Assembly: GCF_003918875.1 (NCBI RefSeq)
Contig: NW_025767293.1
Location: 186,001-250,000 of the forward strand
Origin: Haliotis rubra
Lineage: Eukaryota
Reading direction: 5' to 3'
Length of the DNA: 64,000 nt
Position 1 is the stretch's first letter, and each line of letters opens with the position of its first letter. Below are positions 10,301-48,600 of this stretch, piece by piece. The position numbers and the translations under genes are program-made. A model generated the notes under the pieces. That model ran no database searches and was not told the DNA's origin. It was given only the letters and a program-made list of their open reading frames with translations.

Positions 10301-13300
10301 TTACAATGAATATATGTATGGAAGGTATTTTATCTCTCATACATTTGAATTAAATCACTGCAACCATGTCATTGTCATTGTGGAACCATTTCGTTAATAG
10401 CGCTGACCGTGTCCATTTTTTTTGCCTCTATCCACTGAGTAACACCTGTTGAGATATTACCGTCTAACTGAAATATTTAAATTGACGCTGGTACCCACCG
10501 GATTGATGACGAAAACGTACTTTGTTTACATCGCTGCCCATTCCATCCGTCCTGGCACTGGTTGTCACAGTCACCTGTGACGTGGTGGCAAGACTCTGGT
10601 AAACACGTGGTACACGTCTGTGTACACTCATGTCCATATGTTCCGTCATTACAAGCTGCAGATGAAGCAATGAAACCCTGTGAAACAAGTGTTCACTGTA
10701 AGCAGTACAAGCTGCATCAGAAGCAATGGCACTCTGTGATACAAGTGTTCACTGTAAGCAGTGCAAGGTGCATCAGAAGCCATGGCACTCTGTGATACAA
10801 GTGTTCACTGTAAGCAGTGCAAGGTGCATCAGAAGCAATGGCACTCTGTGATACAAGTGTTCACTGTAAGCAGTGCAAGGTGCATCAGAAGCCATGGCAC
10901 TCTGTGAAACAAGTGTTCACTGTAAGCAGTACAAGCTGCATCAGAAGCCATGGCACTCTGTGATACAAGTGTTCACTGTAAGCAGTGCAAGGTGCATCAG
11001 AAGCCATGGCACTCTGTGATACAAGTGTTCACTGTAAGCAGTACAAGCTGCATCAGAAGCCATGGCACTCTGTGAAACAAGTGTTCACTGTAAGCAGTGC
11101 AAGGTGCATCAGAAGCCATGGCACTCTGTGATAAACAAGTGTACAAGCTGTCAGAAGCCATGGCACTATTGCAAGTGTTTATAAAAATGCATCAGAAGCC
11201 TGCGGACAACTGCGGACAGCTCGTATATTGTGTGTCGGAGAAATGTTGTCAACGATTTCCCCATATATGTCTTCTGTTAAATGCCTAGGTCACTGGATGG
11301 TCTCTGCTGGATGTAAAGAATGTAGGAATCTGCAAACGATGCTATTGCAGCAGCAGAAACGTATTTTCGTCTCGCAAGATGGAAAATTGTTTATATAACA
11401 ATATAGAGACTTCTTTAACTGAAGTATAGTACTATTTTGGGGGCAAGATAGTTTTTAAAAACTTAGGGGGATCCAAATTGTTTTGACATCCAACTTACCA
11501 GCTGACACGAAAAGGTCCAGGTATATCTATAAGCTGTTACCATACAATTCTTTAGATGTCAGCGCGATGTTATACCCGTCATCGGGCTTTATAATTAAAC
11601 ACACATTCACAGACGAGGAAGTGAACTTTACACCCATTGTATACATAAGAACTAGCATTCATCAGAGGAACTACCTTTGAACCTTTGTTTTTTCATTTAG
11701 GACTCATAGCAAAAAGTGGTCAAATAGAGATTAATGAGCTACTGTGACTACTGTAATGCTGTATTCTGTGTATCATTGCTGTCTGTACTTATCGAATTAT
11801 TAGTGTTTAACCTTTTATGTACACTCGTGTGCCATGCTGGAAAACAGCATGTTCTCTCATTCTGGAACAGTTCGTGTTCTTGTAATTAGGTGGTTTCTGT
11901 GTGTGTAGCTATTAGTCAGAAATGTCAAAATCAATATCTTTATGTCACGAGTTGATTCATGTAACCAAAATTAAATAAAACAAGAATTACATAACACAAC
12001 AATAATTATTCAAACACCACATGTATATCAGTTCCGTAATTTCAAGCTTAAATCTCAAACATGTCTGCTTTACACAATCTCCAAAATACACACACTATCT
12101 TGTTTTTAAAGCATTAAACCTGGCAATTTATATACAGCTGTAGGAAACAGTTCAAAATGCATTTGGGGATTTAGTTCAAACATGACGATTTTTGCATTTT
12201 CAAGGTTTGTAACAAATATCATATGTCCATTTATCTCATTTAATCTTTTAGACATGCGCAGAATATCACTATGAACAGTGTCTGCACATATAGTTTGTAT
12301 GCTGTATATATTCAAGACAACTGACTCAAATTAACAGTACTCTGATGTTGACTAACGTGAGCAGCTATATGATACAAACACTGACAACGGTACGTTAAAA
12401 CTTAACTCAGTGACACTGTACGACATACTTGATGTGCAGTTGGTTCCTGTCCAGCCAACCCTACATGTGCAGCTTCCATCAGTAGCGTTACAGATTCCTC
12501 CCTGACACCCAGCTGCACACCCCGTACAGTTTTGTCCGTCCATGTAAAAGCCGTCCTTGCATTCTGGAATGATATAGTAAAAGATAATTGCTTCAGTTCT
12601 ATGGTAATGACAAAATCAGGTCTATATGAAGATACCATCCTCATCCTGACTTTCGCTAACACCCGGTGTCATCACTAATTGTTGTTGATGATGATGATTT
12701 TTACGCTCATGATAATTTTTACGACTCTTTCACCTTTTATGCCTTTGAAATCTGTTTTGATGTGCACTGAAGCTGTTATTCTCAGGCGTTAACGTTTAAC
12801 AATTGTTCTGTTCTTGTGTGACTATGTATGATATTGTCGGGCGTACGGCATAGAATATATGTCAGTCTCGGACAGATCGTAAAGGTCTACTGCATATGGT
12901 TGTGTTGACAATGTTTGATTAGTTGTCAAAAAACGTCATGACTTTACATACCATTATGGATGAACAACTTCTTTATTACTACTCTAACTTTTTAATGAAA
13001 GAAGTTTACATACCATTGCAGTTACTTCCTGTCCAGCCATCTCGACAGCTACAGCTACCGTTGGCCACGTTGCATGTCTCCCTAACACATCCAGCCCCGC
13101 AGTCCACACAACTGTCTCCGTCCACGTAGAACCCGTCTCCGCACACTGGGGAACAAAGCGTTGTTGTGATCTAGGTGAGGAGACTCACGTTGGAGCACAG
13201 GAAACATTTTCTTTGACATACCTCATGTGGACATTTCGATATTTGACAAATGCCTCGTCAGCATAACATGCTTTCAAACATGCTTCTCTGATTCCTATGG

Positions 13301-16300
13301 TGTCCTATAAGTGCCATCGCGTGGCGCGTAAAAAAAGAACTACGTCGCCCACGACGTCGCATAAAAAATACTAAGTCGACGACGTCGCCCGTTATTATTG
13401 TAGTCAAAGTATATTTTACAAAGCGACGTCGCGCAAGACGTCGTCTTTTTTTACGCGCCACGCGATGGCAATTATAGGACACCATAGATTCCTGTTTGCT
13501 TCATCGTTATCCTGATTCGGAAACAAGGAAAGCTAACTCAGGAGGACATGTGGTGGTGTGTGGTTCTGTGCACTAAGCCCAGGTCCCACATCAGTTGAAG
13601 TTAAGCAACGTTGGTCATGGAGAGTCCTTGGATGGATGACCATATCTGGCAGATTGACTCCTGAGAAGTTTTAGGACTTCAGTCCTGCCCCACAACGAAT
13701 CACATATGACACATGTGGTCTCACCTAGGCAAGTGAGTTTTTTAATAAATTGCCTCTGTCCACCAAGCAGTGAATGGGTACCCGGTGAGATAGGCCATAT
13801 GGCTGTTAACCTTCTTGCTCCTCACACGCTGCTTGGGTTATCCGGGGTAATAATGTATTACCGCCTTGGAAACAGGTGCTTTATAAATAACCATTATTAT
13901 CAATAATCATGAACATAACGTTGAAAACTTGGTTCTCATGACCATTATCACTCCGATGTTTGACATGTTGTCACACTTGTAACGTCAGAATGAATCATAA
14001 CATACATGTGGAATAACGGTCGTCTGACTCGTTACTGATTACTCTTCTGAGGTTTTGATGTTTACATTTAGAATCCCTTAAAACAAATATGTCAGAAAAT
14101 ATCAATATTAGAACCTACACTCTTCACATCGCTGACCTATCCATCCGTCTTTACATTGGTTGTTGCAGTTACCGGTGATGTGGTGACAGGTCCCTGGTTT
14201 ACATCCTCGGTTACACTTCTCAGTACAATCCTGTCCATAGGTACCCTCATCACAAGCTGCAGATGATAATGTGCATTTGTACATGTTAATGTTAATAAAC
14301 GGCAAAATACATTCTAGATAGACTAATAAATTTGGCTTCAAAGGACTACACACAAAAACACACACTCACAAACATACACACCCACTCACACCCACCCCAA
14401 ACCACCTCACTCACTAACCCACTCATCCACTCACCCACCCACACATCCACACACCCACTTACTCACTTACCACTCCACTCACACCACTGAACAACACCAT
14501 TTAAAATCCAATTCCAAAACAACCATTGACATGAAATGTGACTCGGACTTCATGCACCCACTCGCATCCACTCACAAACATCCACACCCACTCACATCCA
14601 TCCCCACCTCACTCACTCACTCACCTACCCACTCACTCACTCACACCACTGAACAACACCAGTTAAAATCAAATTCTAATACAACCATTAAGATGACATG
14701 TGACTCGGACTCCATGCACCACATGGAGTAATGGTAAATCCTCACTGTGTTCACAGGTGGGACCTGTCCATCCATCGTGACACTGGTTGTCACAGTCACC
14801 GGTGACGTGGTGGCAGGAACCTGGTTTACATCCTGTGCTACACATCCCTGTGCAGTCTTGTCCATACCTACCCTCATCACAAACTGCAGAGGAAAAATGT
14901 CACATCCCGTTGGAATTATCCTCGGTAATATTGTATTTGACCAATGTATAACATTTCATTATTGATATCATATTCATATATAATTGGTAGATTATGTTGT
15001 CAACAATAGCCAAATAGAACATGTGACGTAAACCCGACTGGCAAACCATTCACCAGAGTCCCTATACACAACGTGTTCAAGGCACAATATGGCTAATATT
15101 TTGCTGATGTACCTGAAAATATTACCTCACGCACCTAAACGATTCAGTGAACTGACGTCGAGTATAGCAGGTGTTTTGTGGCTTATATGGTTATATGACA
15201 ATGCTAGGTTAAAACTTAACTCACTCACTCACTGACTCGCGTGCGACATACTTGATGTGCAGTTGGTTCCTGTCCAGCCAGCTTTACATGCGCAGCTTCC
15301 GTCAGTAGCGTTACAGATTCCTCCCTGACACCCAGCTGCACACCCGGTACAGTTTTGTCCGTCCATGTAAAAGCCGTCCTTGCATTCTGGAAGTAGGAAG
15401 ACTGTTCCTGTGACCAGTTATAAGTTTTATCGACTTTATAAAGGTATAAAGTTATCTTGAACATAACAGGTAGAAACACTGACTACTTACAGTGAAGAGT
15501 TATGCATACAGATGGATACACTCATCGCATGCAGTGCACAGTAATACCAATAATAGATTGTAATACCAACTGCATTAAGGTATACCAACTGCAGCCCTGA
15601 TTATCTGTAGCGTTATAACACTAATTGCACGGTAAGGCATATGGATTCCAACACTAATTGAATTCAGTACTCAGTGAGGCATACGGATTTACACAAATCA
15701 GGTATGCGGATTCTGCCATCCATAACATGTAGGATACTGTAAGCAACACGCATTGATTGAATGTAGCTTACAGTATACGGATTGTAACACTGATAAAGTG
15801 CAGGGCACAGTAAAGAATACAGATTATAACACTGATTATGTGTACCCCACAGTAAGGTATAAGTATTGCAACACGGGTCACATGACAAATATCCTAAGAA
15901 TTTATAACTCATACAGAATGTACAAAATAACACGTTTGCAAATAAATATTACATTTCGACATAAATATGTAAATAAATGTAGACTTTACATACTGTGGCA
16001 GCCAGTTCCTGTCCAGCCAGCTCTACAGGTACAGTTGCCGTCTCCAGAGTCACACACGTCCCCCTCGCATCCACCACCACATTTCACACAACCGTGGTCG
16101 TTTCCGTAGAAGCCGTCCATGCATTCTTTAAACAAAGCCTTGTGTCGGATAACGACGGATAATCAGGTTGTTAAAATAAATAAAAGCGAAAAAACATGAA
16201 CATAATCATAAGATAAAGTCACCTGTACAATTTCGATTATCACCACGCTCTCTTTAAACAAAGGCTTATGTTAACGACTAATAATCAAAGTATTAAGAAA

Positions 16301-19300
16301 CAATCTTAAATGCAAGCGAACAGAAAAATGAACATAATCATGAGATAACGTCCACTGTACAATTTCGAATATAATCATGCTCTCTTTAGACTGACCAATC
16401 TTAGTTTACGTCATTTTTTATCATTTTAATATTTGTATATTTTCCTCGGACAAGTCTGCAAAACATATTCAGAAACACTGAGTACATTGCAGTAAGGAGG
16501 ATGGTAGGGACATGACTGATGTCCCTTAAAACGATGAAATGGCGTTCTAGCTACACTGCTTTTATTGTATGTTTAGAGGGATTGTTAACAAATTTCTATT
16601 TCTTCGTATTGCAGTGTTAAGCTACCTTAACAGCACTATTTAACACATAATTTTCGAGAAAGAAACATTTGAAGTAAATCAAATCAAACTTTGATTTTTT
16701 TTTATTTTATGCTTTGGTCAATCGTACCTATCGTGCACCCATGTCCAGCCCAGCCAGGTGCACAGCTGCAGCGGCCGTCAGCAGCGTCACATTCTCCACC
16801 GTCACATCCGTCTCCACACTCTGTACATGCCTCTCCTTCCGTATAGAACCCAGGTGGACAGGCTGATACACAAAGACTCTGTTGAATTCCATTTTGCAAA
16901 CTTGAAACCGCGGAATTTGAGATGCAATGTCGACTAAAGGATCCATTGAAAGAAATTAACTGGTGGATGATCAAATCAAACTTCCTATGCTGTCTGAGAA
17001 TTATATCATGTTGATTGCCTTCGTCATTCTATAAAACTAGTGAATTGATATTAGATTGTTTGTTTGTCTGTTTAACGCTGCACCCAATATTCCAGCTACT
17101 AGTATATGGCTATCAATAATCGAATCTGGACCAGACAGTCCAAATATTACGACAAGCACGATATTGGAAAGGTTGAAAAGGGAATCCAATTGCTATTATA
17201 CAGCTTATTTAGACAAAGGTGTTACAAAACCGGTGTGTAAAGGATGGAATGCAACGACGAATTGGTAGTAAACGTAGAACTAGTAAACCTTGGTTTGGCG
17301 CTGAATGTGAATTTAAAAAGAAAGTCAGGTGCAGGACTTTGAATAAATCCAAAAAAGATAAGGGACCCGTTTCCCTCCGCGAATACGTGCATGCTAGAAA
17401 TAGTATGATGCTAATTGTCAAGTTAAAAAAGAACAACATCATGAACACAAACTTCGCTTGTTAGAAGAGTCACTTGAAAATCCTGAACGTTTTGTGGAAG
17501 TAATAAAAAAGTTTAAAATCCAACTTTATAGAAAATACTATTCCAAGTCATGAGTGGTACGATCACTTCAAAACTTTATTTAATGTTTCATACCCTGAGA
17601 AAGAATATATTTGTAACATGTTCAGGCCTTCCTCTGATTTTATTATGGACACTGATGTTGAAGATGAAATAACAACTGATATTCTAGATGCACCAATTTC
17701 AGAAGTTGAAATAAGAGGAAGTATTCGACATCTGAAGAATGACAAATCTGCAGGAATAGACAATATTATACCAGAGTTTTTCAAGAACGCGGAAGATGTG
17801 CTTACACCTTACCTACTAGTAATATTTAACATTAAGCTCGAAAATGCAACCTTCCCAGAACCATTGGATGCTGGTATTATCATTCGGTGTAACTACTTAA
17901 ATGATGTGCAACTAAACTATTGCCTTTGTACGTGTTTGAGATTTTTGTCGTGATCGACTGATAAATTACTGTGCATTATAAACACTGAGTGATTCTCTTA
18001 AGGTTAAGCTACAGAATAGCGTTTTGTCATACGATAGATATGACAAAACCATTGTTTCAGTTCATATTCACGTCAGTAAAAATAGCTATAATGAGTGTGA
18101 GAATAGTCTGAAAATTGGCACTGTTATTAATTAAAGCAATTATGGCCACAACGGCATGATACCACCAAGTCGGCGACATATATATTATAAATGGCAACAC
18201 AAAAATACATACATATGTGGTTGCACTACTTATGACTAATAATTCTTTTTGTATTCAAACGTTGAGAATATAAATCATGAATGAAGGGCACATGAATAAA
18301 CTCTATTAGTGAGAAGACATAACTATGCATATGTTTTATGTGTGTGTGTGTGTGTTCGTGTGTGTGTGTGTGTGTGTGTTCGTGTGTTGGGGGAGGGGGG
18401 AGTGTTTAGTTTAAAAAAAAATTATTCACAAAGTGAAAAGGATCGAGGTCAAGTTCTTGCAACTTATAAAACCCCTCTCCAAAGATATTTATAATACCTA
18501 AATATTACATCACAAGCAATTATTAGAAACACAGACAGAGGAAGATTGACAGTTCAGGGTAAGTTATATGATACAAAAGATGTATAGAAAGAAGACTGAA
18601 GTGTGTGTGGGGGTGGGGGTGATAGCCATGGCTTTGTAGTTTATGGCTGATTTAATAGTTTATACATTGGTCCTACCCACAGCTTAAAGATCGTCCTTGA
18701 GTCAGTGAGATGGGACTGTGCTCATAAGAGTTCATTTACCCATTGCCATTTTATCAGAATGTAAACATCTAAAGCGCTATTGAATCTGATTAATATCTAG
18801 AGCATGCTGATGCTGCATCGAATGTATACACACAAAAAACAATCATGTCGAAACAAAGCCACATGGAGTCAGCTCAGTTTCCTTGCTGCCTGGCCGTTAT
18901 GAAAGGTTACCTAGCTGTGTCACCAGCATGTCACACTGTATGACATTCCTTAATGTAATATCGCCATTGAAAAAGGAGTCTTATTGGCTCATTTGTAAGT
19001 GCAAACATTGGATAATGTGAAGGCCTGGGGGAATAAAACTGTTAATTGTCACTGGCATATGTAGTACTGTAAATGTGTCTAGTATTCTGAAACACTTTCG
19101 AAACATATTAAAAGTGAAAATACGGGTTAGAGAGAATCTCCAGCAACCCATACTTGTAGGGATCGGCAGGTCAGGCTCGCTGACTTGGCTGACACATGTC
19201 CTCTTATCCCAATTGCCTATATCGATGGCACTGATATTAAGCACTGGATTGCCTGGTCCAGATTCTATTATTTACAAACCGACATCATACAGCTGGAATA

Positions 19301-20667
19301 TTGCTGAAGGCAGCGTTAAACAACAAACAAACTGATGACGCATATTCGAATATATGTAATATTTGGGCCACAAAATCCACATTAAGTTCATATATGTTAA
19401 GGGGCTTGAGGTTGGAACAAATATTACGGTTATTGTGAGTTATAAACAACATAATTCACCACGAAAGTCAATGTTGCTGAAAGACATTTTGAATCACTTG
19501 GCTGGGAGGGGGTTAAAAGCGGCCGACAATAGAATACTGTAGTCATCACTCTACAGAAGTAGCAAAGGTTTCAACATACTCAGTGTACAGTAGACTCCTA
19601 GCCAGCCAGGCCTACAGGTACATTGTCCGTCTTCGCTGCTGCAGCCACCATCACAGCCCTCACTGCATTGTCCACGGCAGTCAACCCCATAACTCCCAGT
19701 CTCACATTCTTGGAGCAATTAAAGAAACAATAGACAGTTTAATTAAAATATATACTATCACGATGTAAGGGTGTTATACCCTTTTATCAGTTGTTAAATG
19801 TTGCAATTCATTTCTGTTAAATATTCAATATACATGTTGTACACCCTTTTATCAGTTGTTAAATGTTATAATTCATTTCTGTTAAATATTCCATATACAT
19901 GTTGCACACCCCTTTTGTCAGTTGTTAAATATTGCAATTCATTTCTGTTAAATATTCAGTATATGTTGTACACCCCTGTTATCAGTTGTTAAATGTTATA
20001 ATGTCAATTAAGAAACAGTATGTGTCTCCCTGTAAACAGATATAACTGCAGATATGGAGTTAAAGTAATATCAACTCGCTCACTATGAAAATTTGATTAG
20101 ACTCAGGAACTAAAGCTTGTTTTGCTACATGGTGTATTTTTCATATTAGATATACATTTTCTAAAATACTTTACAGTTCCAGTTATACGTGTTCAATGGT
20201 CATAAACCTATGGCTATCAGAATTATCAAAAGCCTGTGGGTGAGTGAGTGAGTTGGGTTTTACGCCGTGTTTTGCAATATTCAAGCAATATCACGGCGGG
20301 GGAAAATAGAAAATGGCTTCACACATTTTATCCATGTAGGGAATCGAAGGCGGGCCTTCGGCCTGACGAGCGAACTCTTTAACAACTAGGCTACCTCATC
20401 CCCCTGTCAAGAGCATTGTAATACTTTCCAGATAAAGGCAGTATATGAGTATATTCCGTTATTATAGCATACGATAGTAACAATTATATTTTTAACTGCA
20501 ACAAAAAAGTACAATCGAAAAAGCATATGAGAAATACAACAGGAGAGATTGAGCATGAGAAATGCTTACACTGAATGATATAGTGGAGGGCAGTGGTGAA
20601 AGTATCACTTACCAGCGCTTGGCTTACACTGAAGCAAGAAAAACCAAAGTACAAAGAAGCAGTGCAT
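7254..20667 (-). CDS. Multi-EGF-repeat type I membrane receptor (MEGF10/Draper/SCARF-like ectodomain), 14 coding exons, about 594 aa
   Basis: Exons 20667-20613, 19708-19580, 16862-16728, 16125-15994, 15386-15252, 14883-14746, 14256-14119, 13145-13014, 12563-12429, 10655-10521, 10153-10016, 9803-9666, 8594-8480, 7383-7254. All junctions are GT-AG and phase compatible; total 1785 nt open to TAA. Confidence 0.88.
7863..8024 (-). mobile_element. SINE family A copy
   Basis: tRNA-like head, TSD ataactttact. Confidence 0.9.
8480..8594 (-). CDS. EGF gene exon 13 (stalk and transmembrane helix)
   Basis: tttttcacag| TELVEHEEQDIASPKLFFWVWIIIIVVLTFGFLACLN(R) |gtgaga; phase 1 to 2. Confidence 0.88.
8937..9185 (+). 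mobile_element. SINE family B, full length
   Basis: Conserved ~250-bp body ending gctggaatattgctgagtgtggtgtcaaactaaac(tcac)n. Confidence 0.9.
9666..9803 (-). CDS. EGF gene exon 12 (EGF-like module 11)
   Basis: CIDGTYGRNCSGLCSRGCTPGSCHHVTGDCNSQCKDGWTGPRCEE; 138 nt, phase 1-1. Confidence 0.92.
10016..10153 (-). CDS. EGF gene exon 11 (EGF-like module 10)
   Basis: CDAGTFGRDCAQKCNPGCKPGTCHHITGDCNYQCKDGWTGRRCEH; 138 nt, phase 1-1. Confidence 0.92.
10521..10655 (-). CDS. EGF gene exon 10 (EGF-like module 9)
   Basis: CNDGTYGHECTQTCTTCLPESCHHVTGDCDNQCQDGWNGQRCKQ; 135 nt, phase 1-1. Confidence 0.92.
10651..11200. repeat. 56-bp minisatellite, about 9 copies, overlapping the exon 10 acceptor
   Basis: Unit tgtgatacaagtgttcactgtaagcagtgcaaggtgcatcagaagccatggcactc. 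Confidence 0.95.
12429..12563 (-). CDS. EGF gene exon 9 (EGF-like module 8)
   Basis: CKDGFYMDGQNCTGCAAGCQGGICNATDGSCTCRVGWTGTNCTS; 135 nt, phase 1-1. Confidence 0.92.
13014..13145 (-). CDS. EGF gene exon 8 (EGF-like module 7)
   Basis: CGDGFYVDGDSCVDCGAGCVRETCNVANGSCSCRDGWTGSNCN; 132 nt, phase 1-1. Confidence 0.92.
13295..13487. mobile_element. Palindromic MITE
   Basis: About 45-bp TIRs ctatggtgtcctataa.tgccatcgcgtggcgcgtaaaaaaaga; apparent 4-bp TSD attc. Confidence 0.85.
13541..13905 (+). mobile_element. Old SINE containing a 5S-rRNA-like segment and an L2-like tail
   Basis: gaagttaagcaacgttgg...cttggatggatgacc resembles the 5S internal control region; central ctctgtccaccaagcagtgaatgggtacc; tail gtgctttataaataaccattattat. 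Confidence 0.6.
14119..14256 (-). CDS. EGF gene exon 7 (EGF-like module 6)
   Basis: CDEGTYGQDCTEKCNRGCKPGTCHHITGNCNNQCKDGWIGQRCEE; 138 nt, phase 1-1. Confidence 0.92.
14355..14722. repeat. (CACT/CACC)-rich tract with a two-copy duplication
   Basis: ctcacaccactgaacaacacca...atgtgactcggact.catgcacc at about 14478 and 14640. Confidence 0.8.
14746..14883 (-). CDS. EGF gene exon 6 (EGF-like module 5)
   Basis: CDEGRYGQDCTGMCSTGCKPGSCHHVTGDCDNQCHDGWTGPTCEH; 138 nt, phase 1-1. Confidence 0.92.
15252..15386 (-). CDS. EGF gene exon 5 (EGF-like module 4)
   Basis: CKDGFYMDGQNCTGCAAGCQGGICNATDGSCACKAGWTGTNCTS; 135 nt, phase 1-1. Confidence 0.92.
15994..16125 (-). CDS. EGF gene exon 4 (EGF-like module 3)
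   Basis: CMDGFYGNDHGCVKCGGGCEGDVCDSGDGNCTCRAGWTGTGCH; 132 nt, phase 1-1. Confidence 0.92.
16728..16862 (-). CDS. EGF gene exon 3 (EGF-like module 2)
   Basis: CPPGFYTEGEACTECGDGCDGGECDAADGRCSCAPGWAGHGCTI; 135 nt, phase 1-1. Confidence 0.92.
   Translation of the reverse strand, partial: PVHLGSIRKERHVQSVETDVTVENVTLLTAAAAVHLAGLDMGAR
17150..17885 (+). mobile_element. Degenerate LINE ORF2 fragment (pre-RT region), intronic and antisense to the gene
   Basis: KPWFGAEC and LDAPISEVEIRGSIRHLKNDKSAGIDNIIPEFFKN...YLLVIFN...FPE motifs, broken by frameshifts. Confidence 0.8.
19115..19331 (+). mobile_element. SINE family B copy (diverged)
   Basis: Aligns to the other B copies. Confidence 0.8.
19580..19708 (-). 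CDS. EGF gene exon 2 (EGF-like module 1)
   Basis: CETGSYGVDCRGQCSEGCDGGCSSEDGQCTCRPGWLGVYCTL; 129 nt, phase 1-1. Confidence 0.9.
19775..20002. repeat. About 65-bp tandem repeat, about 3.5 copies
   Basis: Unit acccttttatcagttgttaaatgttgcaattcatttctgttaaatattc... Confidence 0.9.
20241..20404 (-). mobile_element. SINE family A copy
   Basis: Aligns to the other A copies. Confidence 0.85.
20613..20667 (-). CDS. EGF gene exon 1 (signal peptide)
   Basis: ATG at 20667; MHCFFVLWFFLLQCKPSA then G|gtaagt, phase 1. Confidence 0.82.
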
Positions 20668-21164
20668 TGCAAGCCCAACACACTCAATCAGCCAGCGAAT
20701 GTCAAACTAAAGCTTATGATTGGGGCACTTAATGGACGTCGATGCATTGCTATTAAGCAAAGAGTTGTGTTTTGTTCCCTGGTGTGTGCTGATTCACTAC
20801 ACTGTTGATCTTTTGCCGATCAGTCATCGTTGCACTCAGTAGGAACCATAGCCACAAATATGTGAAAAGAAACATAAAAGATATGTGCATCCCTTTAGAA
20901 GATAATGATTAAGAACAACCCACTCATTTGTGATAATTAACTACAAGCGCTGAATCTTTCAATAAGTTGTACGATTTGTTGGGTTTTGTTCGTTACGAAA
21001 AATACACGTTTGGAAGTTATTCTTTTGGTAACTTCTTTCTTGAAAAAATATGTGATGCATGTTTATTTCAGCAATTAAGATTTGGATGTCATACAGTCTA
21101 CAGAGTTTAAACTGCTGCTGGAACAAACACCAATCAATGTGAAACTGGAAGTCTACCAGTTGGT

Positions 21165-28641: not shown

Positions 28642-30646
28642 TTAAATATCATCTTCTGAAGATGCAGGATCTGGTTTCTTTGGCGATGGTTGGCCTGGTA
28701 ACCTCATTGCAAGTTTTTCCTGGAGTTGCTTCGTTACTTGTGAAAACGCCATGAAATTGACTGGAGTAGGACCAGATTTGGGTATTGCTTTGGTTTGTGT
28801 GGTGAGTTTGGAATCTTTTCGTGGTGGTGGAGGTGGTGGACCGCCTTTGCCTGCTGGTTTCAGTGATGAGGAAGTTGGCCGTTGACCAGAATTTTGATAG
28901 TCCCCATCAAAGGTCTGTAGATCGTCACTAGATGTGGAGCCTCGGCAGCTAGATGAGGAGCCTCGGTGGCTAGATGAGGAGCCTCGGCGGCTAGATGAGG
29001 AACCTCGACTATCTGAAAATGTGCTATCTCTGTCACCAAACCTATGATCAGCTAGCTTTGACCTGATAGGCTGTGGTGATATCTCGGGTGGTCCATGGCA
29101 GGCCTGTTTTGGCAGTGGTGGTAGTGGACGTTTCTGTATTGGTATCGTTTCATTTGAAGACATTTCATTTTGACGACCAGAACTGCACAAGGAAGTAAGG
29201 GATGGGTATTCTTTCACATCAGGTGGGTCTGATGGTTTATCCGTTTCTCTTAAGTTTCCAGGACTCTTGGTTAATTTTGGTATTGGAGGGAAAGAAGGCA
29301 GTTTGGGAACTGTTGATACCTCTTCATTTTCAGCACCCTTTTCCTTCATTCCAAGCAGTTTCTCCTTATTTTCATAGGTATCCGACAATCTCGGGATTGG
29401 TGGAAAAGATAAATCATCAACCTTAGGTTCTCTTTGACGTGAACGACGAGCATCCGAGAGGTTCCGCGAAAGATGACTGGTTTTGGCTTTTAGTGGCAGT
29501 CGTGGAAGTGTAGATGGTCCGGATGGTTGCATTTGACCACGAGTATAAGAGAACTGCCTTTTCTGGGACTCCATTTCAATACTTGTCAGTTCATCATATT
29601 CTGAAGACTGTGATGTTGTAGAAGCACGCCCAAAGTGAGCATCATGTGTTTTGGTAGTTTCGTTTGATGCTGGATGTAACTCGAGCAAGTTTCTTGAAAG
29701 AGGCAAGGTTTTCGTTTTAGGCAAGAGTGATACAGTGGATTTTCCTGCTGACCCCGGCAGATCACAGTCATCAAGAGATTCCTTATTATTCTTTGAGGAA
29801 AAATTATCACTGATCATATCAATGATGTTTTGAGACATTTCCTGGATATTTGGCACACCACTTTCCAATATGGGATGGGTAACGTCCTCTTCGGGTATGA
29901 ACATCCCTTCTGTTTCCATGGAAACAACTGAGCCAGCAGATGCGTACACGGACCCAAAGTCCGCATCTGCTGCGGGTGGCATGTCGAGCCAGGATTTTCT
30001 GAAAAGTGTAGACATTGCAGATTGACGTGAATTCGCATCTAATGATTCTCGAAGGATAACATCATCTCCCTCTTCCGGAGTAACTCGTGTGAGGACAATA
30101 TCCATGTTTTCGTCTTCATCAGGTACGAATGTGTCTGTTTTCTTAGTGTTGGAAAGGTACGCCATCTTGCTGGTTTCGAAAGTAGATACTGTGCTGTCTC
30201 CCCTGCTGTCGTCTACATGAACGTAATCATTTGTTAGATTTGAACTGACACTTCCACGTGCCAGGGCTCCTTTGTAGTTAGATTTAAAACGATTATCGCT
30301 TTTACGCCATCCACGACCGAGTTTCTTCAGTAGGATTCCGCTCAATGTTGAACATTTCTTTGGGGGTTGAGGGGGTTGAGGCCTACCAGTTACTGCAAAT
30401 TCTGTTACTGCTTTAATAGATTCTTCAGAAGATGCTGCACCACAAGAATCATTTGACACAGGCCTTTGTGCACCTAAATACTCATACGAATGACCGTCAC
30501 TCTCATTTGATGATGTGTCTGAGTTGCTTTCGCTTCTCTTCTGCTTTCTTAAGGGTACAGCATCACCCTGGTTCTCGTAGATTGCAGCAATGTCCAATAT
30601 GCTGAAGGACAGGTCATTCAGCCTTTGGTCTCGTTTGCAGCGTCTC
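28642..30646 (-). CDS. Adaptor A terminal exon (cytoplasmic tail)
   Basis: 2-kb uninterrupted ORF; acceptor ccttttcaaag; motifs YENQ, YEYL, YVHV, YDEL, YENK, YQNS, RPLPPLP, PPPPPPRK. Confidence 0.92.
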
Positions 30647-33060
30647 CTTTGAAAAGGTTGAAACAAGTCATATCAAGAAAGGTACCAACTATGTAAAATA
30701 GTTTTTTCTTTATACAGGATATACTATAACATACAAATTCAAAACATTTGTACAGATATACCAATAGAAGTATATACACACCGCGGTTCAAAGGCTACAA
30801 GGTGCTTTTAAGCTATGATTTTGAGAGACAGCTGTCTGGACTCGGTGATAAGAGTACTAGTATATGTGTGAGACATTTCACGAATCAAACAACACACTTT
30901 TGTGAAAATCACCACATAAAAGAGAAGCTAATCAATTACTTGTATGTTGTCACAGCGAATGTTCTCAGCAGTTTTCGTCTTGACAGGACGTCCAGTGAAC
31001 AATTTTAAAACAATTATTCAGTATTCTTTGGATCAAATTGTTCCTTTCTTGTGAGAATATATCTACTTCCTGTATAAAATGACAAGCTATTTGTACTTAC
31101 TTGGTAAACAACAGGATAGCCCATACGAGGAGGAGAAGCAGGATATATACGCCTATGAACCCCAGCGATATATATTCTGGAAAAGGAGTAAATAAAAAGG
31201 TACATGTGACATTTTGTAGAAACAACTAGCTACGTTAGAATCGGCCCTAATTTAATCAGATATACCTACTGGTTATACAAGGTTCGGTTGCATTTACATG
31301 ATTCTGAAAAAGGATTGGGTTTCTTTAAAACATATTTCAATCACCAGCTCTACTTTGTTAAAAAAATTCTGAAAAATCGAAATTGTGAAAACATTATTGA
31401 ATTCATTTGATGCTGAGTGCTGACAGGTTATAGGAACATTAAATCAAACAAGGAAGATTGACTGAACATTGTATCCACAACCCATAAAAACTCAAGAGTG
31501 TCATTTGTTATTAAAATATGCAACTGGTTAATAATCACTTTATTTGCATAATGGACGCTTCCACGTTATATACGATGGCGACCCCAAGGTTTCTGTTGAT
31601 AATGTCATGTAACGCGAATTTGTTAATTAACGGTATTTTGGAAAGTTATATTTTCTGTTACGCTTAACGATAATCCTGGAGCATCACACTTAGATACATA
31701 AAAGGAAGGAATATGAAACATTCAGCTCTAGAGTGCAATCACTCTTAGTTATCTAGAACCCGTGAAAGTCCGTGTTAGAATTGCTCTTTAGTAACCCATG
31801 CTTGTCGTAAGAGGCGACTAATAGGATCGGGTGGTCAGGCTCGCTGACTTGGCTGACACACGTCATCGGTTCCCAATTGCGTAGATCGATGCTCATGCTG
31901 TTGATCACTGGATTGTCTGGTCCAGACTCAATTATTTACAGACCTCCGCCATATAGCCGGGATATTGCTGAGTGCGGCGTAAAACTAAACTCACTCACTC
32001 TGACTAAGAGGGAATGTCCCGACTCATGAAACGTTAGATATATTCAAATGTACAACTTCCGGTTGTGGCATTTCGTCAAGGACAGTATTCCAGTTTTATC
32101 AAGGAGTGTCAGCATGATGTGTGAATGATGCATTTCTCTTATTTAACACTTCGGTGAATCCCATAAGTAAGTCATATGATGCTATGACAACATATACGAC
32201 TGAGCGAACTCCCACTCATGTTAAGTATCGTTAACACAAGCTGCAACATGTCATATCGATTGAGTACGGGTACGATACTATGATGCTATACATCGAGTGA
32301 CGACGTCAATGAGGAGACGTGTGTATGGCTGCCCAGGGTGGTCGCACTCACCATTGATGACGTGTCCCCTGTCTCATGTCTTATTATATGACTCTTTATG
32401 CACTTTTTGAATGAAATCTAATTTGTGTAATTTTTAATTTTGACCCCTGGACCCTTTCTAGGTACCGATCCACAAGGCGTATGAAGCGTTACGACCTGTG
32501 GTAATTCTATGGTGTATCATAGACTTCCGAATGTCGTAGCGTTCAGGACCCAGCATTACAAAGAATTTTCAGTCAAATTGTTGGAAAATGATTTCTGTTT
32601 GTAAAATAATTATCATAAATCTCACAAACATCTTTGTTTCTATTTTTTCGGTCAAGTGAGGTCGGTGATAACTTTCTTTTGCCCGGTAGCTTAGTAACTG
32701 TAACTTGAAAACGGTAAAAACACACACTACCAAACCTCTGCAACAATGTAACCTTGTCATCAACAGCTATGACACTCAGAAAATGAATAATTCGACTCGA
32801 ACTTGAGCTATCATTAATATGAATTTACGATTCAAACATATACAGCAAAACGAAATCCCATACATGTTTAGTATCGTAAAACAATTTGCAACATGTCACT
32901 TCACCTATGAGCAAAGTCATATAGATTGCTTTTCCATGATTCATATTTGGGCAACCATCAGCCCAAGTCTAATGCGAGGCATTAAGTTTGTCTAGTATAT
33001 TAAATAAGAACTCTACATACCCGGTCTCATGTCTTTAAAGGACCATCCGTCCCAAGACAT
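28642..33060 (-). CDS. Single-pass membrane protein with a tiny ectodomain and a long Tyr/Pro-motif tail (transmembrane-adaptor-like, adaptor A), 3 coding exons, about 706 aa
   Basis: Exon 33060-33021 MSWDGWSFKDMRP, G|gtatgt, with an in-frame TAG two codons upstream of the ATG. Exon 31176-31101 (E)YISLGFIGVYILLLLLVWAILLFT(K)|gtaagt. Exon 30646-28642 is the 674-aa ORF from RRCKR onward. Phases 1 and 2 are compatible. Confidence 0.85.
31101..31176 (-). CDS. Adaptor A transmembrane exon
   Basis: ccttttccag|...|gtaagt, 76 nt, hydrophobic stretch of about 23 aa. Confidence 0.88.
31431..32000. repeat. About 570-bp direct duplication, copy 2; includes SINE B at 31759-32000
   Basis: Matches 27898-28474; no TSD after this SINE. 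Confidence 0.92.
33021..33060 (-). CDS. Adaptor A first coding exon
   Basis: 40 nt, ATG with an upstream in-frame stop, phase-1 donor gtatgt. Confidence 0.7.
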
Positions 33061-38762: not shown

Positions 38763-40071
38763 CACCCGTGGTATAAACCTGAATACCGTTCCTTTATTAG
38801 CATTATCATGGGGGTGGGGCCGCGGGGGTAGCCTGGTTGTGAAAGCATTTGCTCTTCACGCCGAAGGCCGGTTTCGATTCCTCAATTGCATACAATGTGT
38901 GAAACTCAAACCACTACAAAGGGCATTTGGCTGCCAAACAGTATGCCGTTTATTAAAACTTTCTCTAAGTTGTCAACGACGTCGCCACTACCACCAAGTA
39001 CAGATAAACCTGAAATAGGTAGGACTGATGCAATGTTAAAGGATAGCGTGTCACATTGATATTTCATGATCATCCTAAAAATCGCTAAAGTTAGGATTAA
39101 GCCGGTGTGCAAATGTAATCGATGATATTTTTCCGGTCACAAATTAATATATACAAATGTAAAAGGAGAGAAGTTCATTTCAAAACAATAATTTCCAAGT
39201 AATATTAGTATTCATATGAATATAAAAGAAAGAATGCTGCAGCGGACCAGAATATATAACTCCTGCCAGGTAAATGCAAATATTAAAACACAACTCCGAG
39301 TAAGAGTACAGTCAGTGCCACGCCCATTTTGAAAGTGCTAGTTTATCTTAAGATGATTCCATGATGTTTCGACAAAAGATAATAAACTCTCTTTTTTGAA
39401 ACTCAATATAATATATTCACATTGACATATTTTTGCTGATTACGGGTAAAGATGTGAAGTCTTACTAACTGCTCAGTATCATTATGTAATATTCTTAATA
39501 TTGGGACGAATCCACACAGCAACAAGGTCCTTTCACTTCTAAGACATCCCCCCAAAATTGTTTATGTACATACGTCCATTTGAATGGACATCCCAGCCCC
39601 ACCCCTCCTCCACTTTTCCCATATAAATCTAATGATCAATGTGACAGGATACATTTACGTATTCTCAGTGAGACGATTCCCTCTATATGAGAATAACGTG
39701 GTATCATGTCATATCCCACGGAGTCACGTACACACGAGTATCCATACACGTATTAACTAAAGAAAACAATGGGGCAAAACTGTTCACATCCGCGTAAAGT
39801 TGAGAAAAGTCGGCCGTGTACGAGAATACAACGGAAACGGAAAAGTGACAGGTGCATCCAAGAAATGTATTTTTAATTTTAGTCTGTCGACAAGTTGGGT
39901 TTCCGATATATTTTTGAAAAAGATATTTTACATAAGTAGCGAACTGTATCCAATTTTGCTATTGTTAAAAACACCTGGCATTGTAACTGTTAGTGCAGTC
40001 AAAATCAGACAGCGATATTATAGGCTGGTTTACATGACAGGACCAGAACCATTAAGTGAAGACTGACATGG

Positions 40072-40073
<2 letters not shown>

Positions 40074-40153
<80 letters not shown>

Positions 40154-40161
40154 GAGAGAGA
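40074..40161. repeat. (GA)n microsatellite
   Basis: Seen directly. Confidence 0.97.
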
Positions 40162-40196
40162 GGTGTTATATTAATTGCTTGTATTTTCATTTCCAG

Positions 40197-40284
40197 TGAA
40201 TAACATCATCATTGCATGGACAATTGCTGGGATTGGAATGGCCCTTGCCTGTTTCTTCCTATTACTATATCTATGCTTGAAATG
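40197..40284 (+). CDS. Adaptor B transmembrane exon
   Basis: 88 nt, phase 1 to 2, hydrophobic helix ending in CLKC. Confidence 0.87.
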
Positions 40285-40449
40285 GTAAGTCTTTCCAAAT
40301 AAATCTTGATTTGTGAAATACGTTTTCCCTATGGCATCAACAGATAATATACGCACACTGGAAATGATACCTTTCACAAAGTCGTAATAACTAAAAACGA
40401 GACAAAAGTGTGACATGGATTCTGTTACGGTTTAAATCAGTGACCAACC

Positions 40450-40480
<31 letters not shown>

Positions 40481-41874
40481 GAATTTGTAACGCGCCAATC
40501 TCACGCCAGCTGGTATGCTCATGGCGCTACAAGTAAAGTTATTTCTTGCTTTTGTTTTAAGTTTTACGTTGTTTGTGATAGTATATGCCGTATGTATTCA
40601 TTTCTTATTCCAGTAAAGACAAGTGTCACGGATGTTCAAGATTTGCATCAGCCTTTCCATCAGATATCGCTACCTTCTACAGGCAAAACTCTTGGGTGGA
40701 CTGTGACCACGAGTACGAGCGTATAAGCTTACAGGACAGGTCCCGGGAGAAAGACACTGTATGCAGCAGTCTACAACCGCATCATGAGGCGCGTCCGGGT
40801 GGGGAGAAAGGAGAAGACTATATAGATCCCCGAGCTTCATCATCAACAGAACATGTCGTAGATGATGTTAGGATATCCAGGTTATCCCATCTTCTGAGAA
40901 CATCGTTCTGGAGTAAAACCAACTCTGAGGAGGTTTTAGAATCTGACCACATACCAACATGTGGAAGCAGCGGGCAAAGGAGAACTCGAAGCTGCCGCAA
41001 GGTGAAGTCAACTGATATTTGTTCGAATACTCTCACTGCGGGGCATTTCATACCAGACTCGGGGGAGATTCGTGCACGGGGACTACCATCCGGAACAGCA
41101 GAAACAATGCCGGATGTCACAGACAGCATGGTTGACATTTTTCAAGAAATCTTCAATCCTTCCAACAACACTCTTAGAAGCCTGCTTCTCAGAACAATTC
41201 ACCCCGCAACTGAAAAAAATAAAAGTCTATCCAAACGTCTCTCTAAGTCTGAGACAGATGTCACCATTGCCAAAACATTCAGATCGTTCGGCAATACAGA
41301 CTACGATCCCTCTACAGACCCACAAATACAAAGTGGCGATGATGACCATTATGTCGCTGTCTCCGATATCAGAGTAACGCCTATACCAAAACGACGAAAA
41401 TCATTGTCCCGGAAGAAACACATCCTTGATGATAAGCAAACGGAAAACGAGTCTGAGCTCAGAAAATTGCCCGGCAGAAGTTTAATTAAATATATTACAA
41501 TCCCCATGTTCGAGGAAAGAAGAGAAGCAAGTATGCCTGTTCCGAGATCCAAACCCATGAGCCCCAGGCAGTGTCAACCAAGCAGCATCTTCAAGACTTC
41601 CTCTGACAAGAAAGGAGGTGGTGAATCTCCCACAAATCGTATGATAGAGGAACACGTACAAGCACCTGCGATGCATCTTGACACCTATGAAAATGAAATC
41701 CTAAGTGGAGTAGGCAGTCAAGAGAATCCGCAAAGCTTTCATGGATCCTTCAGGCGGAGTGTGCAAAAAGCAAGAAATGCTACATGTCTAGACGGACAAG
41801 CAAAAACAGGAAAAGAATATTCGAACGTAAGGATGGTCGTGAAGAATTTGTCATGCTCAATCGAAAACATTTGA
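40197..41874 (+). CDS. Transmembrane-adaptor-like protein (adaptor B), paralog of adaptor A, about 449 aa; 5' exon uncertain
   Basis: Exon 40197-40284 (x)NNIIIAWTIAGIGMALACFFLLLYLCLK(C), acceptor ttttcatttccag, donor gtaagt. Exon 40614-41874, acceptor tttcttattccag, in frame with the 429-aa ORF. Confidence 0.85.
40614..41874 (+). CDS. Adaptor B terminal exon (cytoplasmic tail)
   Basis: 1.26-kb ORF; motifs YERI, YIDP, YVAV, IKYITI, YENE, YSNV. Confidence 0.9.
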
Positions 41875-42343
41875 ATGGATTCAGAATTGTTGAACACTTG
41901 AATTGATGAATAATGATTTTTTATACGAAAAATATTATTAGTTCACATATATATGGTCTCCTTGTTGAGTAGAATATGACCTTCGTGTCCATTGCCAAAC
42001 CTTTTGTAGAACACATGGTGTCATCACGGATGTTTACTGATGCACTCGCATAATATTCACCACGTTAGGCCGTATCAAATCTGTTGGGACAGAAAAGTGA
42101 GACTGGCTATTTCTGGGAGGTATCGTATCTATATCACCCATATGGGAAGGAGGACACAGGGTAGTATTGTAGTCCTTAGGTAGATTACACCTTTCGGAGA
42201 ACGGTGATTGGCTGATTATAGCCAATGAAGTGAAGCCGCATCATAAGCGTAGGGATTTGGGTATTCCTTACATCACAGGTTTCCTCATAGAGAAACTGGT
42301 GTTTTCATTTTAGCGGGTTTTTTTATCGAAGACTGATACGTGT

Positions 42344-45640: not shown

Positions 45641-48600
45641 CAGTAGTAGTAGTTATTTGCTTTATCTAACGTCGCACGCACAACTAAGGTATTTCGGCGA
45701 CGGGGTAGTACACTTATTAAGAAATGAGGGGGAACAAAATATAGAAATTTTGAAAGAGTGGTGTTACTACCCCAAAAAGATTGTATTAGTGTTTGTTGAA
45801 TTTGGTAGAGTGGATAATGTTTTCCTATTCATTGCAAGTTATAATTGAATTTATCTATTATTGTGTTGTTAACTTTATTTGTTAGGTCTGTTTTGGAGTT
45901 AGGTATTTCTATTTTGTTTGGCAGCTTGTTCTGCCATTTCGTTGCCATGGGCTCCGATATGTGACGAGACCCAGATAAAATGTACTTGATTATTTTTATT
46001 TTGGTGGTATAGTATTCTTCTGTATATGTTATTGATTAGATCTAGTCTTTTTGTTGTAGAGTAATTTTTGAGAGCTTGTATGGAGCTTAAGGAATCCGTT
46101 AAAAAATGCAGATGGTAGTGCTTGTTTGTTTGCAAATCCTGAACTATGGCTGCGAGTTCTTCTGTGAAGATACTGGAGTTTGCTGGGAGATTATAGGATT
46201 GTTTCTGGCTTTTTTTGGATTTGTAGATACCAAAACCAGTATTATCATTTTGGTCCTTGGATCCGTCAGTATAGATGTAAAGATTATCTTGTGGATTGTA
46301 ATTTTGTTGTATGAATTCTTGCACTGTGAATTTATTAAGTATATAGTTTTCAGTAAGTTTTGTGTTGGCCAATATTTTTGGCAGTAATGCTGGAGGAAGA
46401 GATTTGTAATATGGGTTTGTATTATATTCTGTTGTATATAAATCAAGTTGTTGTTTCATTTCCTGTATTTTTTGTCCAAAAGGTTTTGGGTATTTGCCTT
46501 TATTGATAATGATTTTATTTTTATTTTTAAGAGATGTATAGTAGTTTTCAGTTTTGTTTGTAATGGGGTTGTTAAGGGATCAGTTACATATTTCATTGTA
46601 CATCTTTCCCATTGGAGAGTGAGGTCTAGTTCCCCGCATTCTACCAATAATGCTTGGAGGGATGTACCTGGGAAGGCCCCAGTTTTACATTTAAGTGCTT
46701 GGAATTGAATGAAACTGAGTTTGTTTATATGTGTTTGTGCCATATCTTGAAATATTTCGCAGCCATAGACTAATTGAGATTTGATGAGTGATTTATATAG
46801 TAATAGTAATGTTTGTTTGTTGCTAACCTATTTACTTTGTGATGAGTATTTAATAATGTTGAGCTCTGACTTGCATTATTCTTGTATGAATTGAATGTGT
46901 TTGTTCCATGTTAAGTGCTGGTCAAGGATTAGACCTAGAAATTTTACTGTATCTGATTGCTGTAACTTTTGTTTGTTAATATAAAGATGTACATTTTGTT
47001 TTCTTCGATGTTGTGCTTTGAATACTACAGTTGTTGTTTTAGTGGTAGAGAGTTGGAACCTTCATTGGTTGGCCCAGTTTTCAATATGGTTAAGTGTAGC
47101 TTGAATTTGTTTTTGTGTATATTTTTTCATTTTTCATTAACCCATATTGCTCCATCGTCGGGAAACTGGGATTTGTTTATGTTTTCACTGAGTTTGTTGA
47201 ATATATCATCAACCATAACATTGAAGAGAGTGGGTGAGATGATACTTCCCTAGAGTGTGCCATTTTCTAGTGTACATTAAACGCCAAAAGAAACGTTACC
47301 CCCCTTCCTGAATGACGTAGCTACCTATCTTCAACTGGTGTTGTGATGCGTGGACGTCCTCTTCTTGGTCTGTCTACGGGGACCCCAGTCTGTCTGAAGC
47401 CCTGACTCAGTTTTATATAACCGTGATACGACCCCGCCTGCGCCATTACAATGGCTCGTTTTCTCTCTTCAGCTGTTAATCGGGGCACAGTTCTCTTACT
47501 TGTGTATAATATCATGCATTCTAGGCTCTCTTTATAACCTATATAATCATTCTACATGTGAAATGGAAGCAAATACTGCTTAAATATTGCTGCGTTTTGG
47601 CGATTGATCATTGCTATGTATTAACAGAAAATGGAAAAATGTTACTTTGCAAGCAAAAAGTTTAACAAAGATAATTGTAGATGTTCCCAAACATTTGTTC
47701 ACAATATGAAAGACACGTTTTACTTGTTTTCACAATTGCAATTCAGCAGAAAATGTTTTAAAAGACTGAAATCATAGGAATGATTATTTTACATTTTACA
47801 CACTCTGCAACAGTTGTTTCTTGTTTAAATACATTGTAGTTGAAAAACGGTGACTTTAAAAGGGTTAATCTTTGTCTCAACGCGGAATTTTATTTAAACC
47901 TTTCTTTTGGACATCTAAATCACTGTTATTAGTTTATTTCGGCATGGACGAAAATAGGACAATTTAACTCTTCTGAAAAAGATGTATTTCACCTAAATAT
48001 GAATGCATTTGAGAAATTTTTTCGTGATTTGCATAAAGCTGTGTTTATAAGCTTTCTTGCAAACTAATACCTTCTTAAATATATTTGATAGTTTTTAAGT
48101 AATTCATAATTGTAGGAGGGTAACGTTTCTTTTGGCATTTTGTGTATAGTTTTGCGTCTATGGAGACTTTAAAGTCTCTGCCTGTTAGAAAGGCTGATAC
48201 ACAATTTAGAAGTGCCCCTTTTAAACCATCTTTTGTACTTTTTGGATGACACCCCCTCTCCGGAGCATATCAAAGGCCTTGGGGAAATCCAAAAAGACTG
48301 CAAATGTGTATTTTTTGTATTTTGTGCAGTTCTGATTTAGTTATGGATTTGTGCTAGATGATCTATGGTGGAGCGATGTTTGAGGAAGCCTGATTGAGTT
48401 ATTGTGTAAGGCGGTTGTTAACCATACCCTCCATGGTTTTGCATATGTTAGATGTAAGAGATATTGGCCGATATGATTCGGCTTTGTTTACGTCTTGGCC
48501 TTGTTTGTGTACGGGTATGATAAGGGAGTGTTTCCAGGCTTTTGGTATTTGACCGTTTATCCAAGCTGTATTATAAAGTTTTAGTAGTTGGTTTATTAAT

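Follow-up and report, generated by a model that had tools for sequence, protein, structure and literature searches.

Do two neighbouring abalone genes descend from a single ancestor, and do the cytoplasmic tails of their products share a conserved block that could dock a partner protein? This question is raised by a stretch of 64,000 nucleotides from Haliotis rubra (assembly GCF_003918875.1, contig NW_025767293.1, positions 186,001 to 250,000 of the forward strand), hereafter called the window, in which all coordinates below are counted unless another locus is named. A first-pass annotation, made by reading the sequence alone, had noted short motifs in the same order in the translations of two open reading frames (ORFs) and had proposed ancient paralogy together with a conserved binding site. 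The minus-strand ORF at 28642-30666 corresponds to LOC124255109 (gene A), and the plus-strand ORF at 40585-41874 shares 98% identity with the uncharacterized protein LOC124255100 isoform X2 of H. rubra (gene B). The observation was confirmed in part. The best explanation is that A and B are abalone-restricted single-pass membrane proteins, each exposing very few residues outside the cell and extending a long disordered tail into the cytoplasm. We hold it to be quite probable that they are paralogous, gene structure included, while for the block itself a common origin and a function are plausible, with the balance tilted slightly in their favour.

Gene structure and synteny of the pair

A and B stand head to head, with their start codons 5.9 kb apart, and follow a common plan of three coding exons, in which a phase-1 and then a phase-2 intron flank an exon that encodes the transmembrane (TM) helix only. 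On the minus strand, coding exon 1 of A (33021..33060) encodes the short ectodomain MSWDGWSFKDMRP and ends in a phase-1 donor; exon 2 (31101..31176, 76 bp) encodes the TM helix and is entered in phase 1 and left in phase 2; exon 3, the last (28642..30646), encodes the entire cytoplasmic tail. On the plus strand, coding exon 1 of B (38943..39018) encodes the short ectodomain MPFIKTFSKLSTTSPLPPSTDKPEI, again with a phase-1 donor, and agrees with the N-terminal end of P0002, its H. rufescens orthologue. It is followed by exon 2 (40197..40284, 88 bp), which likewise holds only the TM helix between phase 1 and phase 2, and by the last exon 3 (40614..41874) with the entire tail; in the protein P0001, the exon 2/3 junction reads LYLCLK/C/KDKC. 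An in-frame ATG at 38895, upstream of 38943, is an alternative start of B. The ectodomain ahead of the TM helix comprises approximately 13-20 residues in A and 17-25 in B, or ~40 in B when counted from the upstream ATG. All splice sites of both genes are canonical; the exons were read individually on the genomic sequence, and the full-length proteins are database sequences (P0001-P0005) and not a joined spliced model. AlphaFold2 models, built on shallow alignments and with a mean pLDDT (predicted local distance difference test) of 34-37, contain one confident TM helix in each protein (residues 13-48 in A and 12-47 in B, pLDDT 70-90), in agreement with the single hydrophobic stretch that each possesses.

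Is this arrangement peculiar to H. rubra? The orthologues of A are 84% identical in H. asinina and 68% identical in H. rufescens (LOC125382123), and the H. rufescens orthologue of B (LOC125382124) is 60% identical. B is missing from the called genes of the H. asinina locus (L001, CM074532.1), where its last exon (L001:678-1928, minus strand) is present as an intact frame of 416 codons with 76% identity to H. rubra B. The head-to-head pair is kept in H. rubra, H. rufescens (L002) and H. asinina. Because the arrangement is common to all three species, the duplication, if real, is older than their split, and it is only in this sense, as predating the divergence of these species, that the word "ancient" is supported. 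Codon comparison with the orthologues gave an overall ratio of nonsynonymous to synonymous substitution rates (dN/dS) of 0.24-0.34 for A and 0.39-0.45 for B, which indicates purifying selection on both.

Several further features were observed within and around B. The first intron contains a (GA)n microsatellite at 40056-40160, just ahead of the TM exon, and the second intron contains an (AAT)n run at 40450-40478. Two short stretches, 38800-38905 and 40484-40601, reach a summed contig depth in the thousands in three DNA runs and have many loose ends; the loose ends near 38866 carry a tRNA-like GGTTCGATTCC box. Both stretches look like repeats of the short interspersed nuclear element (SINE) type, one just upstream of the B start codon and the other within the second intron. 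A second organism (~95% identical) is represented by contigs that are without 2 + 7 = 9 bases at 41304-41313, an in-frame deletion of three codons in the part of the B tail that follows the block.

Similarity of the A and B tails

Six pairs of strings had been picked by eye from the two tails. All are present where they had been placed and are collinear, at residues 27, 42, 96, 151, 175 and 366 of the B ORF and 25, 59, 214, 252, 274 and 429 of the A ORF. The outermost pairs contain tyrosine. The juxtamembrane tyrosine motifs are DIATFY (40663-40680) and HEYERI (40708-40725) in B (40663..40725), invariant in the three species, and DIAAIY (30577-30594) and HSYEYL (30475-30492) in A (30475..30594); all six sequences of the two families keep the tyrosine of DIAxxY and that of HxYEx(L/I). 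The block itself comprises three islands, which we refer to as m1, m2 and m3: RISRLSHLLRTSFW (40870..40911), TAGHFIPD (41035..41058) and MPDVTDSMVDIFQEIFNPSNN (41107..41169) on the plus strand in B, and RQSAMSTLFRKSWL (29986..30027), TEGMFIPE (29890..29913) and IQEMSQNIIDMISDNFSSKNN (29785..29847) on the minus strand in A. The last pair, DTYEN in both tails (41680..41694 in B, plus strand; 29368..29382 in A, minus strand), proved to be a coincidence of H. rubra and not a shared motif: B of H. rufescens reads DNLDQN, and A reads DTFEN in H. rufescens, with Tyr replaced by Phe, and DSYES in H. asinina, with Asn replaced by Ser.

The next question is whether the block similarity exceeds chance. 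The hand-picked blocks, chosen post hoc after the data had been seen, gave a score that was reached by 1/2000 and 0/2000 shuffles, and with profiles by 0/1000 (z 5.7); over these block comparisons, z was about 5-5.7. Cheap gaps, which suit disordered tails with spacers of variable length, yielded whole-protein alignments with z of 3.3-5.3 against full shuffles and 2.1-3.4 against shuffles within 25-residue windows, and a profile-profile local score that was equalled in 3/400 column shuffles and in 7/400 window shuffles. When profiles of A and B were compared over their full matrix, the top-scoring local alignment fell on the m2-m3 segment, in which the spacing is nearly equal (43 vs 45 residues); the best local family-profile alignment stops exactly at the NN of the block, at a score that 26/400 column shuffles also reach. 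Unguided MAFFT recovered the block alignment of the first-pass annotation, with 15 columns invariant across the six sequences. With full families, hhalign aligned only the end of the TM helix together with DIAxxY and HxYE (P 0.005-0.007, hhalign probability 6-8%).

Other results weigh against a real similarity of the block. Each family is represented by three species, six sequences in total. BLASTP of A against B never aligned the block, and the Smith-Waterman score with standard gaps was reached by 47/500 shuffles. In HMMER searches with block or full-family hidden Markov models (HMMs), run in both directions, the other family did not rise above 3,000 shuffled decoys, among which the real sequences ranked from 25th to 1,655th. 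For the tails alone, hhalign returned P 0.10-0.13 and a probability under 1%; a separate test, in which the 60-100 residues that follow the TM helix were shuffled, was not significant and did not support the hhalign match there; and the conserved columns of A and B coincide no more often than chance would give (odds ratio 1.4, p 0.31). Thus, the comparison with shuffled controls succeeds for the block-only and cheap-gap schemes and fails for BLASTP, standard gaps and HMMER.

A further point against the block as first drawn is that m1 and m2 can be paired in more than one way, since A holds a second similar unit. The unit in question (unit 1, SNTKKTDTFVPDEDENMDIVL, 30091..30153, minus strand) is a second copy of FxP(D/E) plus MDIVL and is invariant or nearly so in the three species. 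Paired with SNTLTAGHFVPDSGE of B, it gives the highest ungapped score in the entire matrix, 33.3 (26.3 for TEGMFIPE); unit 1 against B is equalled in 4/1000 shuffles and unit 1 against unit 2 of A in 36/1000. Unit 1 is also the first match of hhalign on the tails (P 0.1). TAGHFIPD and TEGMFIPE are both present as described, although TAGHFIPD pairs at least as well with TDTFVPDEDE (30091-30153); ISRLSHLLRTS of B similarly pairs with TSKMAYLSNTK of A about as well as with RQSAMSTLFRKSW. To judge from these alignments, A may contain a single module in two units. Constraint in A is strongest over KKCSTL...DIVL (dN/dS 0.08-0.11), a part that has a counterpart in B only for its end, which is unit 1.

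How, then, should the similarity be explained? It is possible, though we consider it rather doubtful, that A and B are paralogues whose block similarity is a chance chaining of short hydrophobic/acidic and Ser/Arg matches, each family having conserved islands of its own that were chained by eye or by a cheap-gap aligner. The standard-gap, HMMER and hhalign tail tests are what such chaining would produce, as are two pairings of about equal score, uncorrelated conservation patterns and the one-species coincidence of DTYEN; it accounts poorly for a top local alignment of the whole matrix that falls on m2-m3 with matched spacing, for the z of the block test, and for aligned islands that are among the most constrained in both families and include a predicted amphipathic helix at an equal relative place. 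That A and B are unrelated neighbours of simple common architecture, their similarities being due to chance or composition, appears unlikely. Significance is reached by no standard sequence test, as this explanation would have it, but it leaves unexplained why, in three species, two adjacent divergent genes share an unusual architecture and a TM-only exon between phase-1 and phase-2 introns, the hhalign match at the TM end, DIAxxY and HxYE, and cheap-gap alignments that beat window shuffles.

Taken by itself, the A-B sequence evidence is marginal (~p 0.003-0.07, depending on gap cost), so the case for paralogy leans at least equally on gene-level facts: adjacency, the same unusual architecture in both, and introns that agree in position and phase, all of it kept in three species. 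On these grounds, paralogy is likely, mainly through synteny and the exon plan, whereas the motif alignment that had been offered for it is marginal. The case is a caution that collinear motifs picked by eye in disordered tails border on statistical support.

Constraint on the islands and their possible role

Whatever their relationship between the families, are the islands conserved within each? Island m1 is basic and serine-rich, with the pattern RxSxhSxLh..S(F/W), where h is hydrophobic; in B, it is 13/14 identical in each orthologue, with a helix predicted at low confidence. Its second RxS is not kept by the B orthologues of H. rufescens (STSFW) and H. asinina (RTPFW). Island m2 is a hydrophobic-proline-acid peptide, TxGxF(I/V)P(D/E). 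In A, measured over TEGMFIPE and the next residues ED, it is 10/10 identical to both orthologues, with dN/dS 0 (dN = 0, dS 0.5-1.0); in B, measured over TAGHFIPD and the next residues SGE, it is 10/11 identical to each, with dN/dS 0.01-0.08. Island m3, hhDhhx(D/E)xF, is predicted to be an acidic amphipathic helix; A is identical to its orthologues at 24/24 and 23/24 positions (dN/dS 0-0.03) and B at 20/21 and 16/21. The spacers between the islands have lower identity and a dN/dS of 0.26-0.46, are of unequal length in A and B, and evolve at a pace like that of the remaining tails (0.23-0.48), with synonymous change ongoing. Since constrained islands are thus separated by spacers evolving like the rest of the tail, the block is to be regarded as three short linear motifs and not as a domain.

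The models agree with this description. The tails are disordered with very few helices, m3 being among them in both proteins (residues 306-318 in A and 215-222 in B, P0002), at low pLDDT with a local rise. The hydrophobic moment (muH) of m3, 0.48-0.59 in the two families (0.50 in A), marks it as strongly amphipathic in both; it is reached by 0.6-2.6% of its own shuffles, and by 0.6-1.3% for B, also at 0.48-0.59; m1 is not amphipathic by the same measure.

Does the block belong to anything already named? Pfam contained 0 families matching either block, and the full proteins gave only unrelated matches below the cut-off at E up to 10. The best match of the block profile in PDB was CCT theta, with an E of 0.38, which is noise. 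These results bear out the statement that the block matches no named motif. A search of 1.84 billion cluster representatives with the block HMM returned only A, B and P0006, with no third family; P0006, a tandem-repeat ORF of 1,267 residues, was rejected as an artefact, its score being the sum of 17 spacer matches at 1.7 bits each. Thus, the search suggested for the block retrieved no already named domain and nothing beyond the two abalone families, to which the block is confined as far as a profile of 92 columns can detect, since in a library this large a match is estimated to need ~40 bits. The two tails were also used as queries in word-index searches, which covered proteins of 0.55-1.75x the query length and likewise returned Haliotis proteins only. 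Among motifs compared by eye, the 14-3-3/RxS-h motif was dropped, as two B orthologues do not retain the second site, and none of DEF FxFP, LxVP, TRAF, tankyrase, beta-TrCP, FFAT and dileucine fits all six sequences.

These data make it possible to suggest how the block might act. A and B would be transcribed divergently from one 5.9-kb intergenic region, and m1-m2-m3 would be short linear motifs that both genes received from their common ancestor and kept for docking one or more cytosolic partners at the membrane. The acidic amphipathic helix m3 may fold onto a hydrophobic groove of the partner, with m2 as an adjoining F-(I/V)-P-acid peptide anchor, so that m2 and m3 would form a bipartite docking site; the RxS of m1 could serve as a phospho-switch. 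Of the conserved binding site that had been proposed, the conservation is borne out for m2 and m3 by purifying selection and the predicted amphipathic helix, and the binding is putative.

Some observations count against this docking proposal. Although m3 of B has a dN/dS of 0.06 in the comparison with H. asinina, the value against H. rufescens is 0.64, the changes lying in the helix flanks around an invariant core, SMVDIFQEIF. Furthermore, no run recorded as RNA contains the stretch. The contigs over 38800-41950 include introns and are therefore DNA of the same or a close species, and a 151-base contig at 40779-40929 comes from a run only guessed to be RNA; transcription of A and B rests on the NCBI gene models and purifying selection. 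What the analysis establishes is the motifs with their order, the exon structures, the conserved synteny, the constraint on m2 and m3, the disorder and helix predictions and the lack of the block outside the two families; common descent of the block and any binding we infer.

Two more specific versions of the docking proposal can be considered. In one, the block would be an abalone-restricted tripartite docking module composed of SxhxxL..., F-(I/V)-P-(D/E) and an hhDhh helix, present once in B and twice in A, in compact form at 30091-30153 and spread over 29785-30027, which would recruit one common cytosolic partner to a divergently transcribed pair of membrane scaffolds situated beside a multi-EGF (epidermal growth factor) receptor tyrosine phosphatase gene. 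We regard this as speculative and improbable; if true, it would be a new class of linear motif in a lophotrochozoan signalling scaffold. In the other, for which we see very little probability, m3 would be an LD-motif-like helix docking on a helical-bundle/CH-type LD-binding domain and would tie the scaffold to proteins of adhesion or the cytoskeleton. IDMISDNF in A and VDIFQEIF in B are indeed hydrophobic at 0, +3 and +7, have Asp at +1, and are helical and amphipathic by prediction; however, position +4 is Ser or Gln and there is no Leu anywhere, the resemblance did not come from a search, and amphipathic acidic helices of this sort are common.

If the islands are docking sites, they would constitute a non-tyrosine recruitment module in mollusc scaffolds resembling the transmembrane adaptor proteins (TRAPs) discussed below, and the short m2 and m3 peptides would let the partner be fished directly. 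To our knowledge, membrane-proximal signalling in molluscs has hardly been studied. In its present state, the locus offers a lineage-restricted orphan gene pair with a weakly supported internal similarity, and its analysis helps annotation, as for B of H. asinina.

Neighbouring genes and comparison with known systems

What surrounds the pair? On the minus strand, at about 9600-20700, lies a run of EGF exons of the laminin/MEGF type (e.g., CDEGRYGQDCTGMCSTGCKPGSC...DGWTGPTCE). The syntenic H. asinina gene adjoining A has a product of 1,297 residues with EGF_laminin/PEAR1-like and two Y_phosphatase matches; on the basis of this synteny, the run is part of a multi-EGF receptor tyrosine phosphatase gene, placed tail-to-head with A approximately 8 kb past its 3' end. 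In tblastn searches with A and B against the whole window, no A/B-like exon was detected inside this phosphatase gene, and no further exon of the A/B family was detected elsewhere. Two pieces of retroelement-like ORFs were noticed by eye only, at 45899-46459 (minus strand) and 17618-17953 (plus strand); one of the two ends RNase H-like (...HIGAHGNEMAEQAAK), and the other has a reverse-transcriptase-like fragment (...DKSAGIDNIIPEFFK).

Two known systems invite comparison with the pair. The LD motif of paxillin has the consensus LDxLLxxL and a described binding mode (PMC7703752). Island m3 is similar in being an acidic amphipathic helix, by prediction, in a disordered scaffold, with Asp after the first hydrophobic residue. 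It departs from the consensus at +4 and has no leucines (I-D-M-I-S-D-N-F in A, V-D-I-F-Q-E-I-F in B), so the resemblance is one of register only and not of membership.

The other system is the TRAP class, defined by a short outside part (few to ~16 residues), one TM helix and a non-enzymatic tail with tyrosine motifs that is phosphorylated and binds SH2 proteins (PMC3342071). Some TRAPs carry a juxtamembrane CxxC palmitoylation motif, while LAX is without it (PMC3342071). In B, a CxxC directly follows the TM helix (40624-40635): H. rubra has CHGC there and H. rufescens CRGC, but the motif is not invariant, because H. asinina has CLGW (L001 around 1900). The single juxtamembrane cysteine of A lies in KRRC. 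A and B differ from TRAPs in that there is no sequence relation (with E allowed up to 10, neither a LAT nor a PAG family was returned by Pfam, and no other family came near its cut-off), in being found in abalones only, and in the CxxC of B, which is not conserved. We know of no TRAP counterpart of the non-tyrosine m1-m2-m3 islands. Nevertheless, like the vertebrate TRAPs LAT, NTAL/LAB, PAG/Cbp and LAX, both proteins combine a short ectodomain and a single TM helix with membrane-proximal cysteines and a long tail with tyrosine motifs and without an enzyme domain, to which A adds proline-rich stretches. By architecture, A and B therefore fit the definition of TRAPs as a functional class, with putative tyrosine phosphorylation and SH2 binding.

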